This document shows positions 1,883 through 42,823 of a stretch of DNA of 64,000 nucleotides, in pieces. The notes under the pieces were generated by a model. It saw nothing but the letters and a program-made list of their open reading frames with translations. It was not told the DNA's origin and did no database searches. The first letter of the stretch is position 1; each line of letters opens with the position of its first letter. The stretch spans positions 8,556,001-8,620,000 of the forward strand of contig NC_088854.1 in the NCBI RefSeq assembly GCF_963853765.1. Reading direction: 5' to 3'. The DNA comes from Magallana gigas. Lineage: Eukaryota. A program made the translations under genes and the position numbers.

Positions 1883-4800
1883 TTAATCCTTGCCTACTAC
1901 ATATCGCTGTACCAAGTAATATGTCCAGAAAACAACGTTGAATAACAGAAAACTGACCGGGAACCCGACACGAGCCACCTTGTCCACCTGCCGAGCTCTC
2001 TGTAGGAAGTCGATTTCTCTCCTGTCCGGTACCCCATTAGAGGGTAGCATAGGACCCTTTTCTCGCATTGATGGTTGATTCTAGACAAAGATTGAAAATG
2101 TTTCTTAAATCTAATAAGGAAAAATAAATCTGAGGATTTCACAACTGAAAAAAAATCCTTTAATTACAACTTTTGAAAAACATATTATTCAAAAAGTAAT
2201 AACGTATTATTCAAGGCAATGTTTCAAAATGTAAATAAAAGAGTATTACTAGTCTTGTTTACGGCCAGAACTGAATAAGCTAATCTACAAACATAAATGT
2301 TTGGAAATATTTGGTTGCAGGAGAGTGTGACATGATAGAGATCATTTGTTCAAAACAAAGTACCTTCATAGAGGTATATTTGACGTGTCTTCGTGTCTGC
2401 ACGTTGATGTAAGCATATTCTAGTAAGGCAGCAAACACAAACACTAATCCCATTGACATCCACACATCTATAGCTTTGATGTATGAAACACGTGGTAGGG
2501 AATTTCTAATACCGGAACTCTGTGTTGTCATGGTGAGTACACACAAAACTCCTAACGAGATTCTGGCGGGAACTGCATCCACATGAATCCAAAAGGATAT
2601 CCAAGAGAGTATGACTATAAGTATGCTTGGCACAAAAATCTGGGCCAAATAGTACCCTAAATTTCGTCGGAAGAAGAGTTTGGCTTGAAGACATGCAAAT
2701 TCGTTGTCTGAAATACAATGTATAAATATGTTATGAAATAATAGAGATAAATGTATTAAATCTCTACCCTTATTCAATGGTTACAATTCCATATTTTGTA
2801 TTTAAAAAGAATATTTCTCTGAAAATATTCATGGATTTGATCAATCATTTTTTTCATCAGATGGAATCTTTTAATTCATATCAATATTTTCTGTGCATAG
2901 ATGATACCGCTCAAAAACGGACAGGGAAAAAGAACAATAGACAGAAACAATTATTGAGTCAAAGAAACAACATCCTGGGGATGTAAAGTTGAATAAAGAA
3001 AATACCCAGAATTTTACAACCATATCTAAAAATAGGGATATGTTAATACAGTTAGGAGTACTTTATGGACAAAGACTTAAGTCGGTAAAATGAAGGCAAA
3101 ATATCTAGACTATCACCAGAGAACTTAAAATTATTATATTTTTTTTTTAATTTCATAACCAAAAGAGCCGCTGAATCAGAGCTTGATATCTAGAATTCTT
3201 TATGGTGATTTCCAAGACAAGGATGAAATAGCTACCACGTATCGATCCTGCTCTGGCAATATACCCAGCTGTTTGTGGCTGTAAAAAATAACTTACTTGG
3301 TCCAAACGAGGTGGTCTTTTCACAGGAACCCGTATGTATTTGTTTATAGAAGTAGAACTGAGGGGTCTCCTGTTCGTCGTTTTTGTCAGCGTTCATCAAA
3401 ATCACCGGATCTCTCTTGTGCCAATGAAAGACCACATTCTCTATGCTGTACGCATCTGCAAGAATATTTCGTTGTGAGCATACGCCAAAAACTTAATCCT
3501 TTAATTAGTGAAAGGAAAATAATGAAATTTTGTAGAGAGCTTCTTGGTTTTCAAATCAACAAGGAACTTTTTTCATGACCAATAAATTAATGCAAAAGGG
3601 CTTTTATTTTTATGAAGCCTGCGGTTTATTATGAACTTGACAATCACGCCTTCTCATTGGGTTTCAGCACTTATGACCTGCCAACCCCAAAACCAATTAC
3701 GGAGTGAAAGAATAGTATGTGGAAACCAAAATACTGCAAACAACTAGGCCACTTCTAGTACTAGTTCTCATTAAGAAATGTGGTAAAATCCCAGCAGAAA
3801 CACCCAAACAATGCTGAGACGAATTCATTAGATGTACAATTCCAATGCAATTCGTATATACGGTTTGTAGGGCAAACTGTCTCTTTGTACACATTGTTTG
3901 GAGCTTTGTAATAAAATAGAACTGCCCTCAGGGACTAAACTGACTTCTAAAAATATCTATCAAAGTTGTCATTCTGTCGAAACCTTTTGCATTTCGCCCT
4001 CATTGTCAGTGATCAAGTTTACTTGCGCTTCCATGTAATGTTTAAACAGTGAAAGCTAATTTTCATCGAAGCAATTATTCAGGAAAAACCCCCACCAAAA
4101 ATATGCCTGAAGAATTAATCTTAAATCTGAAAAATTACAAAGTTAAATGTGTGATTCGCTTTGAGACCTAAATTATCATTGGTGCATACTTTCATTTACA
4201 ACAGAAAAAGTTGAATGGAAGGAGCTACTTTCTCCAATTAGCTTTGTTTTCGTTATGTATGTAAAGTGTTATTCTTTATTCGAAATTGCAGACCGATTCA
4301 AATATAACTGACATTTTTCAAATTGATATGCCCTGGGGAGATAACTCTTTTATTAAAACATGACTAATCTTTCGAATGCATATAATTTTAAAGATTTGGA
4401 ATTAAAATCTTTTAATTTACATTAAGTCCTCCATTTCACGAGTGGTATTAATGAAATCAATTAACGAACAGATTTTACACACATTTCATTGTTTTGAGTC
4501 ATAGTACAGTTCAAAGTATTGTTACAACGTTTACAAGGCCCTTCCGAACAACAGGGAGATATAAATTATCTTTACTGTTCAAATCCTACCAAGAATCAAT
4601 ATCGAAAGGAATGACCATTTATCTAAGGAAACTGTCTTTGCTTCTTCTTTGGTGACTACTTAATGGTGGGATATAACACCTCTAAGGGGGTTTTCTCTTA
4701 CGAATCTGTCGGCGATCAATACTCACAGCTCTCCAAGAAAATGGTGCACTCCTGGTCATCCAGCGGAAAGTTGTGAAGTTTCATCGTACATGTCAGAGTC

Positions 4801-40400: not shown

Positions 40401-42823
40401 AAAAGGCCCATGGGCCACGTCATTCACCCGAGCAACATTGCTTTCAAATAATTTTGTGCAATATGGTACCTCGGAAGAATAACAGAAATTAATATCCAAA
40501 TTTTACAAGTATTTTTGCATATACTTAATCTTTGACAAATGTATCTTCGTTGAATACCATTTTACCAAAAATGAGATCCTATGCAATATATATTTCTTAA
40601 TTTTTGGTAGGGGTACACTGTTGACTTCCCATTTCCTTTATTCTAGCCCCCCCCCCCCCACACTTTATAAAGCGATCAAAATATATGAGGGCATATAGGT
40701 AAAGTTCTTTCTCAACTACTTACTGGTCATTGTATTTTATTAAAAAAATTCCTTTATGTGAAAGAAGAAAATTGTACCAAATTTCAAACATTTAAAAATT
40801 TAATTGGTAATCCTTATATCATTCTTTCAATTTTTCTGTACAGGTATTTAACGTTTTGTGAAACATTTTTAATGATCAACCAAAATTTCAGCGTCAATCG
40901 TAGAATTATAAGCATGATACAAAGCTCACAATTCTGCTTTGTTTGAGTCATGTTTTTGTTCACATGAGTTTATTACATTCAACGTAAGATTTTCAAACCT
41001 GGTATTTCATATTCAGCATTTAAAATGTTAAAGAACAAAAGCTCTGTGTGCAAACATAGAATCGTGAGCAAAGCTCTGTATCTTGCTTTTAACTCGAAGC
41101 TTGACACTCAAATATAGTTGGAAAAATGCAAACAATTAAAACAAATGAAAAATGCACCAAAACAAATATAGAGCACAGTTTATTTTTTTAAATGAATCAT
41201 ATATATATTTATATATATCTATACATTTCCATCAGCGAAATTTGTTTAGACTTAATAGAATCGAGAACATGCTGAGCATCTTAATAAAACACGTTGCATT
41301 AATCAACCATTGCGTAAATATCGTACAGAATGATTTATTTTAGTATGTTGGTTATGTTGTAAATGCATCATTTTTCTCACATTGCGCAGGTAAACAGCCA
41401 GCTGTCTGATTTACCAAAGTCTATGTTTGATTTGATACATAAAAACCACAAAATACAGATGATAGTTCCCAAAGTAATTAATGAAACTAAAACGAAAATC
41501 AACAAGCTAAAACCACCGTCAAAAGAGAAATGTCAACACATTGGAATATTAAGGTGGAATAACACATCACCACAAAATGGCTGAAAACTGTTTTGTTTAA
41601 TTAAAAAGGATTTCAACGCTGGCACCATGTAACATGCTTTTGTTACTTACTGAATTGAATATTTTAGATATTCATTTTTTATCTCCAAACTGCATTTTTT
41701 TCGCTTTTTTGACATACGTACAGTTTATCATTATATCTTTCATAATCAAATACTTTCCTGTTAATTTGAGTGACTTTTTCCTCAATTTACTTCACAAAAT
41801 CGACAACAATATATCTTGCATGTTTCAAAGATTCCCTTCGCACGCGAACTGTTGCAAATAAAAACAAATTATCATTGTCAGATTGACACGTTTATCATAC
41901 GTTTAAGATGGCTGCTTCGAACAATTTGTCGAAATACGGAATACCGAAAATTAGCTCTTAATTTTTGAAATTGATATTTTCCTTACTATAAGGATTATTT
42001 AGGGTAATTTACGTTGAATTTGACCCAGTATCTTTTGAGAGATTTTTAAAAATGCACCACCTTTTTGCAGGTTGGAGATTTTCTCAGCTTCGAATAAACA
42101 CTAGCATTTCATTTTTGCAATTTATAATCAACTTTCTTTAGGGATGCTTTGTGCATAATTTGGTTGAAATTTCCTAAGTGGTTTTAGAGAAGAAGTTCAA
42201 AATATGAAAAGTTTACAGACGGACGGACGGACTGATAGACGGACGGACAGACGGACAAATGTGATCAGTAAAACTCTTTAGCTTTTTGCTCAGGTGAGCT
42301 TAATACCAACAGATTTTAACTAGAACTTGATGAGTTTTCTCTGTGTACACTGCGATGGGTTAATACAAGATATACAATGCAGTAAAGTACTACTAGAATC
42401 TTGGCTGAGGCTCATTCTAGTTCATAATTTACGTACTTAATGAATGAAACGTTAACATAATTGATAAAAAATATTCTAGTTATATTTTAAGACATATTTA
42501 TAATCAAGTTTTAAAATTTTGCTTTGATAGTGTAAAGAAAGTTAAACATTTATTCTTATTTAAAAAATATATTATATTTCATCATCGTTTACATAAACAT
42601 CGGTTAAAGTTTTTCTCATAAAATCGTTTTAATCTAATTCACTTAAACACCCCCCACATTTTCATCCTACTTTTACCTAACATTTATTGTTATCTATTAT
42701 ATGCAGCGGGAAAGAGACTCTATAAAGGCTTGGATCAAGTTCATCTTACCTTTGCAGCTGTTGTGACCTGACCATGCGACCAAGCATAAGAACAGTCCAC
42801 AGACTGGTGAAGAGAATGTTCAT
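31489..42823 (-). CDS. Cys-loop ligand-gated chloride channel subunit C, 390 aa; exons 42823-42750, 39684-39614, 39479-39412, 38517-38291, 36416-36334, 34372-34223, 32357-32020, 31650-31489
   Basis: Exon sizes are identical to gene B and join in frame with canonical splice sites. Signal peptide [20 protein letters not shown], Cys-loop [15 protein letters not shown], loop C CSTVNSFNTEFSC, M2 identical to B, M4 [27 protein letters not shown]. Confidence 0.94.
32580..33222 (+). mobile_element. Penelope-like retroelement 3' fragment inserted in intron 6 of gene C
   Basis: ORF 32714-32911 ([55 protein letters not shown]) resembles the PLE post-RT thumb/linker motif. A hammerhead ribozyme follows. 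The ~640-bp segment is absent from the homologous intron of gene B (~18970). Confidence 0.75.
32929..33055 (+). ncRNA. Type I hammerhead ribozyme
   Basis: Stem I GGACCC (32929-34) pairs with GGGTCC (33050-55). Core CTGATGA at 32935-41. Stem II GGCGG (32942-46) pairs with CCGCC (32983-87). Core GAAA at 32988-91. Stem III ACACTC (32991-96) pairs with GAGTGT (33043-48). The cleavage triplet is GTC, cutting after C33049. Confidence 0.9.
35280..35830 (-). mobile_element. Old HINE-like relic in reverse orientation
   Basis: (gtct)n/(gtcc)n microsatellite followed by aaactttttacatgttttacttcttctctagaac. Degenerate counterparts in gene B (~20820-21300) suggest the insertion predates the B/C duplication. 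Confidence 0.55.
35841..36182. mobile_element. TTAA-flanked MITE family 1, internally deleted copy 3
   Basis: aggggcatggtcaccatttgggtcaaaa ... ttttatcaaaatcgtaaccacgtccct. Absent from gene B intron 5. Confidence 0.7.
36489..37466. mobile_element. TA-flanked Tc1/mariner-type non-autonomous element
   Basis: ta|cactagtcaaaatttctaacgccc ... ggatgttaggaattttgaccagta|ta. The site is empty in gene B intron 4 (~21830). Confidence 0.75.
40397..42303 (+). mobile_element. HINE-like element with nested insertions, intron 1 of gene C
   Basis: Same 5' (aaacaaaaggcccatgggccac) and 3' (gacggacggac...caggtgagct) ends. Contains a partial TTAA-MITE at ~40850-41110. The site is empty in gene B (~25145). Confidence 0.75.

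Follow-up and report, generated by a model that had tools for sequence, protein, structure and literature searches.

Intact tandem genes of an oyster branch of the molluscan GlyR/GluCl-like channel family

GluClAc1 and GluClAc2 of Aplysia californica were reportedly described by Kehoe in 2009 as molluscan glutamate-gated chloride channels. GluClAc2 responds to glutamate, beta-alanine, gamma-aminobutyric acid (GABA) and taurine, with an Arg at position 93 binding the alpha-carboxylate of glutamate; GluClAc1 lacks the Arg of loop D and is weakly functional (PMC4178172). In the annelid Alvinella pompejana, Alpo5 and Alpo6 are gated by glycine, GABA and taurine, and Alpo7 (Alv-a1-pHCl) by protons; the Alvinella subunits are about 43% identical to human glycine receptor (GlyR) alpha, and intracellular domains of 11 to 118 residues are predicted for the homologue set (PMC4801368). 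The Crassostrea gigas genome encodes subunits only of the molluscan glutamate-gated chloride channel (GluCl) clade (Dufour 2013; PMC3757052), and the literature searched yielded no characterised bivalve GlyR/GluCl-like channel. Here we analyse 64,000 nucleotides (nt) of Magallana gigas DNA (the window; chromosome OY970746.1 of GCA_963853765.1, about 8,556,001-8,620,000), the minus strand of which carries three intact eight-exon Cys-loop receptor genes, C, B and A. These genes probably encode subunits of anion-selective pentameric ligand-gated channels that form, among the taxa sampled, an oyster branch of the molluscan GlyR/GluCl-like family. The original prediction had called them orphans; they are in fact annotated RefSeq models, and the new aspect is a functionally uncharacterised oyster member group of a known family.

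Structure and transcription of the genes

The genes were identified by a six-frame motif scan and spliced models. Eight coding blocks per gene were found by all-against-all comparison of open segments on the minus strand, exon ends were set from the AG and GT sites listed around each block, and exon 1 of gene A was located through a scan for a signal peptide and a donor site. The window DNA is AT-rich and contains no runs of N. The models are the following (aa, amino acids; UTR, untranslated region):

42823..31489, minus strand: coding sequence of gene C, 390 aa, 100% identical to XP_034299999.2
42823-42750, 39684-39614, 39479-39412 (68 nt), 38517-38291, minus strand: exons 1-4 of gene C
36416-36334 (83 nt), 34372-34223, 32357-32020 (M1-M3), 31650-31489 (M4 and stop), minus strand: exons 5-8 of gene C
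to about 30219, minus strand: 3'UTR of gene C
25684..17920, minus strand: coding sequence of gene B, 390 aa, 100% identical to XP_034299974.2
25684-25611, 24444-24374, 24231-24164 (68 nt), 23649-23423, minus strand: exons 1-4 of gene B
21764-21682 (83 nt), 20155-20006, 18830-18493, 18081-17920, minus strand: exons 5-8 of gene B
12830..1883, minus strand: coding sequence of gene A, 410 aa, 100% identical to XP_011426280.1
12830-12748, 8968-8898, 7902-7835 (68 nt), 7145-6919, minus strand: exons 1-4 of gene A
4809-4727 (83 nt), 3455-3297, 2707-2364, 2080-1883, minus strand: exons 5-8 of gene A
12891 to about 558, minus strand: mRNA of gene A

Position 42823 is the ATG of C and position 1883 the final base of the A stop codon. 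Exon lengths are 74-71-68-227-83-150-338-162 in genes C and B and 83-71-68-227-83-159-344-198 in gene A; every intron is of the GT..AG type, and the phases read 2,1,0,2,1,1,0 in each gene. Both the spliced models and the RefSeq identities thereby confirmed the three same-strand genes with identical intron phases and exons of 68 and 83 nt. Exons of these two lengths match the structure of GlyR and GABA-A genes. All three identical RefSeq proteins are from Magallana (Crassostrea) gigas and are named "glycine receptor subunit alpha-2-like isoform X2" (B), "glycine receptor subunit alpha-2 isoform X1" (C) and "glycine receptor subunit alpha-2" (A).

The window was placed on OY970746.1 through loci L009 and L013, both 100% identical to it; in L009 a fourth subunit gene, D, lies on the same strand downstream of A and begins about 4.5 kilobases (kb) past window position 1:

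L009:27319-30948, minus strand: gene D, 409 aa, of the P0270/XP_065930922 type

Its M3 and M4 motifs are 51 residues apart, its loop C counts 13 residues, and Thr replaces Ser at position 150 in loop B. The tandem array originally predicted thus stands for the three genes in the window and needs extension by a member just outside it; the array consists of four tandem paralogues in the order C-B-A-D.

In each window gene, exon 4 matched the Pfam domain Neur_chan_LBD (PF02931), while exons 7 and 8 matched Neur_chan_memb (PF02932), and each protein carries the C-x13-C Cys-loop with its FP.D motif (a 15-residue loop, residues 157-171 of A and 154-168 of B and C). The closest solved relatives are GlyR alpha2/3/1, with an E value of 7e-107 over the whole protein and about 70% identity in the M1-M3 exon. 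The AlphaFold model of C (mean predicted confidence, pLDDT, of 81.5) shows a beta-sandwich followed by helices 241-264, 270-294, 303-343 and 356-389, and matches GlyR alpha chains with template modelling (TM) scores of 0.87-0.89 and a Foldseek probability of 1.0. The PAR motif was confirmed in all three genes at the cytoplasmic end of M2:

32212..32220, minus strand: PAR motif of C
18685-18693, minus strand: PAR motif of B
2562-2570, minus strand: PAR motif of A

By sequence, this motif and a GlyR-alpha-like M2 place A, B and C in the anion-selective branch (GlyR / GABA-A / GluCl). At M2 position 6' stands Ile in B and C and Leu in A, followed by Cys at 7' (approximate codons 32185-32205 in C, 18658-18678 in B and 2535-2555 in A). 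GlyR, GABA-A and nematode GluCl have the Thr of the picrotoxin site at 6'. Leu at 6' is common to Aplysia GluClAc2 and most mollusc relatives, which makes it a family trait; the residue at this position in the mollusc family predicts a putatively unusual pore-blocker pharmacology.

The intracellular segment between M3 and M4 is compact:

31582..32049, minus strand: M3-M4 segment of C, 33 residues, interrupted by intron 7 (369 nt)
18013-18522, minus strand: M3-M4 segment of B, 33 residues
1997-2399, minus strand: M3-M4 segment of A, 40 residues

These lengths were counted from the motif ending M3, YINV, to the motif preceding M4, AR.VD; by the usual helix limits they amount to about 40-50 aa, the length first proposed. 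In the model of C, M3 reaches residue 343, a low-confidence linker of 12 residues (344-355) follows, and a long M4 helix occupies 356-389. The same count gave 24-66 residues in other mollusc members of the family and 75-115 in vertebrate GlyR alpha. The short loop, put forward as distinctive, is therefore real but a trait of the whole mollusc family. An exon missed in the M3-M4 loop was considered and rejected, since exon 7 is joined directly to exon 8 in the RNA of A, B and C.

All three genes are represented by spliced RNA contigs, and lack of expression, which would have refuted the original prediction, is thereby dismissed for each of them. For B, contigs from two studies (X15 and X16), mapped to 17850-23849, hold the joints 18081/18493, 18830/20006, 20155/21682 and 21764/23423, corresponding to exons 8-7, 7-6, 6-5 and 5-4; all four read CT..AC on the plus strand, and a loose end enters exon 3. 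Logan mRNA contigs with an uninterrupted coding sequence were present in at least 24 runs for C and at least 24 for A, and the mRNA contigs L003 (C) and L010 (A) align exon for exon with the models, adding 3'UTRs of about 1.3-1.5 kb. According to the run survey, tissue could be assigned through papers for only two of the SRA runs holding transcripts; C mRNA was assembled from gill runs SRR27190615 and SRR27190618 and from the spat soft-body run SRR24058836 (tissues from PMC11171025 and PMC10416452).

In isoform X2 of C (380 aa), the first 30 nt of exon 4 (38488..38517, minus strand) are skipped through an internal AG acceptor. The skip removes ten residues that constitute loop D, including the agonist-binding F54 and R56. 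Products of 380 aa also occur among the Logan transcript contigs of the C cluster, and B has the same sequence and internal AG at 23620-23649. The variant may reflect noise in splicing, or be a regulated form whose complementary face can no longer bind agonist. As for B, RefSeq has two further isoforms: X1, in which ten residues are added where exons 1 and 2 meet, and one of 369 aa that begins from another start (MKSI...). They would imply an alternative exon within intron 1 (25611-24444).

Phylogenetic position and recent duplication

Relatives were collected with a profile of the three M1-M3 exons run against a representative library; it brought up mostly unnamed fragments and fused predictions and served to supply the full-length P0048. 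Word searches with this relative and then with P0258, which is B, returned named proteins. Trees were built with FastTree (111 rows) and with IQ-TREE (79 rows; LG+C20 with posterior mean site frequencies, quick search), leaving out fused or fragmentary predictions, near-identical duplicates and anything outside the two word searches. Ecdysozoan GluCls were set as outgroup, so that the trees do not test the placement of those channels; their signature, Arg 37 with Thr 54, is absent from the window genes, which have Ile, Thr and Thr (A, B and C) at position 37 and Phe at 54.

In both trees a single mollusc clade (support 97-98) is sister to vertebrate GlyR alpha. Since it is the mollusc clade as a whole that holds this position, no single alpha subunit is orthologous to the window genes, and the orthology to vertebrate GLRA genes that the RefSeq names imply did not appear. 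Within the mollusc clade, a bivalve-only clade (95) is sister (SH-aLRT 91) to a gastropod clade holding Aplysia GluClAc1 (P0298) and GluClAc2 (P0260, verified as such through residue numbering). The bivalve clade contains an oyster-only clade with support 99 and the topology D+(A+(B/C)). Orthologues of A in C. virginica, Ostrea and Saccostrea are 86-94% identical to it. Ostrea and Saccostrea each have one member of the B/C group, which has multiplied in Crassostrea/Magallana. On the sequences compared, A, B, C and D are lineage-specific co-orthologues of the Aplysia channels and not 1:1 orthologues of any characterised channel, a point on which the original prediction had staked itself and which trees containing GlyR, GluCl and mollusc sequences bore out.

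The youngest branch of the B/C group unites B with two genes on another chromosome. These B-like genes, P0243 (387 aa) and P0268 (390 aa), lie 34 kb apart on OY970748.1 (L001 and L002; 10.94-11.00 Mb). Their exon lengths nearly equal those of B, the sole difference being a last exon 9 nt shorter in P0243. Some of their exons were missed by tblastn, and stitching of exact matches recovered them all. The flanks of both loci are 80-88% identical to those of B, which means that the copied block exceeded the gene itself. We rejected the idea that L001 and L002 represent divergent haplotypes of B: they lie on another chromosome of the same assembly, are separate RefSeq genes and have orthologues in C. 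angulata. All B-type copies keep their open reading frames and every splice site.

Divergence was estimated by the Nei-Gojobori method. For B and C the ratio of nonsynonymous to synonymous divergence (dN/dS, or omega) is 0.22 at a dS of 0.34, and the further B-like copies have dS values of 0.12-0.23. Between A and B/C, dS is at or near saturation, and wherever an estimate of dS was obtained, omega does not exceed about 0.15. With B/C-type genes duplicated inside Crassostrea/Magallana at these dS values, and an A+B/C+D clade found only in oysters among the sampled sequences, the notion of a locally expanding family is supported.

The ligand-binding site

Pocket positions were read from alignments and numbered after Blarre et al. 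for GluCl/GluClAc2 (PMC4178172). A, B and C share an uncharged residue at position 37, together with F54, S121, S150-Y151 and F201. Position 37 is Ile in A and Thr in B and C, in agreement with the claim that none has the GluCl R37; lack of this Arg, offered as a distinctive feature, is the rule in molluscan GluCl and GlyR. The positions that set the three genes apart are these:

38491-38493, minus strand: loop D Arg codon of C
23623-23625, minus strand: loop D Arg codon of B
7119..7121, minus strand: Tyr codon of A at the loop D Arg position (GlyR alpha1 R65, GluClAc2 R98)
20025..20027, minus strand: codon for Gly218 of B, replacing the first loop C Cys
34284..34310, minus strand: acidic loop F insert of C (LDDNDEQTL)
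20067-20093, minus strand: acidic loop F insert of B
3364-3390, minus strand: acidic loop F insert of A (ADKNDEQET)

C possesses R56 too, and its loop C motif F-N-T...F corresponds to Y202-N-T204...F207 when C is aligned with GlyR alpha2 by HMMER. Judged by these residues, C keeps the complete GlyR-type amino-acid pocket, the Thr being present in the HMMER alignment only. When the GlyR contacts (F63, R65, S129, F159, Y202, T204, F207 and the disulfide) are followed through the array, C has them all with swaps between Phe and Tyr, B is without the Thr and the disulfide, and A is without R65 and the Thr. The binding set of GluClAc2 (uncharged 37, Y/F54, R56, R93, S121, S150, Y151, T198 and F201) is complete in none of the three, and its signature, R93 with the loop C sequence TKTYKETGSFS, was found only in gastropod orthologues among the sampled sequences. 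The non-standard ligands of the original prediction are not implied by such a pattern: C retains F54, R56, S121, the Ser-Tyr of loop B and the F-N-T...F of loop C. Moreover, some of those ligands are not exotic. Relatives are gated by glutamate, beta-alanine, GABA, taurine, glycine or protons, so that taurine, beta-alanine and protons represent ordinary pharmacology for lophotrochozoan channels of this family (PMC4178172, PMC4801368). From the sequences, exotic ligands are not indicated for C and are no more than a possibility for A and B.

Under the reading we favour, that of probable subunits of ligand-gated anion channels, five subunits would assemble around a chloride pore lined by M2, and agonist would bind at a subunit interface, where loops A-C of one partner face loops D-G of the next, opening the pore. 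Because it keeps all the GlyR-type contacts, C is the likely agonist-binding subunit and, by analogy with its Aplysia and Alvinella relatives, may open in response to a small amino acid of the kind represented by glycine, beta-alanine, taurine, GABA and glutamate. A has Tyr in place of R56 and Asn in place of the loop C Thr; this Tyr and all 13 residues of its loop C do not vary among four oyster genera, with orthologues in C. virginica, Ostrea edulis and Saccostrea. The missing loop D Arg and the invariance of loops B and C over the four genera suggest that A most likely gives only the principal face in heteromers. The short M3-M4 loop would imply little cytoplasmic anchoring or regulation.

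B retains R56 but has Ile for the loop C Thr and Gly for the first loop C Cys. The distances of 13 (A) and 11 (B and C) residues between the loop C Cys positions were as originally given; in B, however, the first of these positions is Gly and not Cys, and B is thus without the loop C disulfide. Gly218 is also present in other M. gigas assemblies and in C. angulata, and the RNA contigs covering exon 6 (20006-20155) show no differences. P0243 and P0268 carry Gln for the loop D Arg, and P0268 also Arg for the loop C Phe. B and its copies have variously lost the disulfide and Thr of loop C and the Arg of loop D, and they evolve under relaxed constraint. They may act as modulatory partners or be drifting duplicates. 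In the stronger form of the latter idea, which we consider unlikely, relaxed selection lets all members of the B lineage (B and the pair on OY970748.1) decay as redundant duplicates of little or no functional importance, leaving C, A and D as the only working subunits. The contacts have indeed gone stepwise, and omega climbs from 0.22 for B-C to 0.60 for B-P0243; inside the B lineage it reaches 0.69-0.91 in M1-M3. On the other hand, reading frames, all splice sites and near-equal exon lengths are intact in every copy, two independent RNA studies show B to be transcribed and spliced correctly, its specific changes have persisted, being shared with C. angulata, and loss of the loop C disulfide is seen in other intact mollusc subfamilies as well.

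The acidic loop F insert, DKNDEQE in A and DDNDEQ in B and C, was confirmed as predicted. The A and B/C clades have its conserved NDEQ core in common; D, Aplysia GluClAc1/2 and vertebrate GlyR lack the insert. It places 3-4 extra acidic residues at the subunit interface of A, B and C, and could be thought to confer gating or strong modulation by pH, Ca2+ or Zn2+, in the manner of Alpo7 and arthropod pHCl. Although an annelid proton-gated GlyR-like channel exists (PMC4801368), we regard such proton- or cation-modulated channels as highly improbable: acidic loops are common and non-specific, and the amino-acid contacts kept in C would be needless for gating by protons only.

Several observations weigh against the favoured reading. 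Loop C exceeds that of GlyR by 1-3 residues and can be aligned in more than one way, the Thr204-equivalent of C being Asn by MAFFT and Thr by HMMER. None of A, B and C matches a characterised pocket exactly; position 93 is Gln in C, Lys in B and Pro in A. The acidic insert, in all three genes, has no counterpart in characterised relatives. Among the four B/C-type paralogues of M. gigas, the pocket and loop C vary at 12/17 sites, against 44/184 in the rest of the ectodomain (Fisher p 1.6e-4). The trees were built without annelid, Lottia, GABA-A, HisCl and pHCl sequences, and no functional study of any oyster subunit was found in the literature searched.

The excess of pocket changes deserves separate mention. 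In the A orthologues of the four genera, the pocket and loop C are variable at 0/23 sites, against 27/184 elsewhere in the ectodomain. Set against such a strongly constrained A, the changes in the young B/C copies fit, as far as sequence goes, either relaxation or a changing ligand specificity. The second option would lead to an unusual-ligand or chemosensory set, in which A and D form a conserved core and fast-duplicating B/C-type subunits adjust heteromeric chloride channels of gill or other peripheral cells to osmolytes or to cues from the environment (betaine, amines or metals, for example), in parallel to the chemotactile receptors of cephalopods. Besides the enrichment of change in recent paralogues and the invariance of A, this proposal draws on copies located on two chromosomes with differing losses of canonical contacts, on the insert specific to the A and B/C clades, and on the full-length C mRNA of gill libraries (PMC11171025). 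Yet C has its complete amino-acid pocket, there are just about 4-6 copies, far below a chemoreceptor-scale expansion, dN/dS stays below 1 throughout, and the pocket changes are mostly losses of known contacts alongside a relaxed transmembrane domain in the B lineage, which looks like relaxation. Furthermore, gill contains nerves, and RNA from this tissue therefore shows neither epithelial nor sensory expression. Taken together, these considerations make the chemosensory set quite unlikely. In a related version, which we consider very unlikely, a two-tier system would operate, with A (and D) as an obligatory conserved core and B/C-type subunits setting ligand specificity, the heteromers sensing osmolytes or environmental chemicals in gill or peripheral cells instead of serving synaptic inhibition. 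The contrast between the conserved pocket of A and the fast-diversifying pockets of B/C leaves room for heteromers and for a chemosensory use.

Should the ligands turn out to be ordinary, the result is routine annotation; otherwise, the array would show the re-tuning of inhibitory receptors after duplication. In either case it offers a natural experiment: C with a canonical pocket and a splice variant without loop D, A without the complementary-face Arg and otherwise conserved, and a B lineage shedding contacts. Oysters carry several tandem arrays of GlyR/GluCl-like channels, and the minimal intracellular loops (390 aa in total in B and C) make convenient targets for structural work.

Neighbouring sequence and comparison with known channels

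Upstream, C is adjoined by a gene with a MIEAP (mitochondria-eating protein) domain, whose last exon is a 234-aa open reading frame (ORF):

48218-48922, minus strand: last exon of the MIEAP-domain gene
51756-52037 and 53484-53795, minus strand: open segments about 75% identical in protein
54341-55255, plus strand: 304-aa ORF, Tc1/mariner-type transposase (DDE_3 and HTH_Tnp_Tc3_2)

One of the two open segments has a weak, sub-threshold TCAD2 match; the pair resembles duplicated exons or a repeat within the MIEAP gene region. Intron 4 of B contains, at about 22450-23450, a repeat with very high RNA depth, up to about 75,000 in run X18 and 10-40 reads in 1% of a polyA run. Many joints that go back or skip, as well as read ends, were found there, and similar copies lie at 44.5-45.8 kb. 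The repeat is probably an abundant transcribed element of the short interspersed (SINE) or satellite type that does not belong to the gene. A scan of the whole window with Rfam at gathering thresholds, including intron 6 of C (32929-33055), gave zero family matches.

As to described channels, Aplysia GluClAc1/2 belong to the same mollusc GlyR-like family and are 43-44% identical to B. They share with the window genes the PAR pore, hydrophobicity at 6', the short M3-M4 loop and the lack of Arg at position 37, and F/Y54, S121, S150-Y151 and F201 are conserved; like A, GluClAc1 is without the loop D Arg. Unlike GluClAc2, the window genes have neither R93 nor the TKTYKETGSFS loop C with its Thr198, their own loop C being longer and different. 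Overall identity to vertebrate GlyR alpha1-4 is about 44-50%, rising to about 70% in M1-M3, and C has equivalents of F63, R65, S129, E157-S158, Y202 (as Phe), T204 and F207. The differences from GlyR alpha consist in a loop B Tyr where GlyR has F159, Ile/Leu in place of Thr at M2 6', an M3-M4 segment of 33-40 residues versus 75-115, the lack of R65 in A and the lack of the loop C disulfide in B. Alvinella Alpo5-7, which we set beside the window genes by description and not by sequence, are lophotrochozoan anion-selective GlyR-like subunits of an annelid, and their agonists, taurine, glycine, GABA and protons, give the range to expect. The cephalopod chemotactile receptors likewise arose by tandem lineage-specific duplication of molluscan genes for pentameric ligand-gated channels, the changes clustering at the ligand-binding site; however, they belong to the cationic nAChR-like branch, comprise much larger expansions, have lost the canonical agonist pocket and have demonstrated sensory expression.

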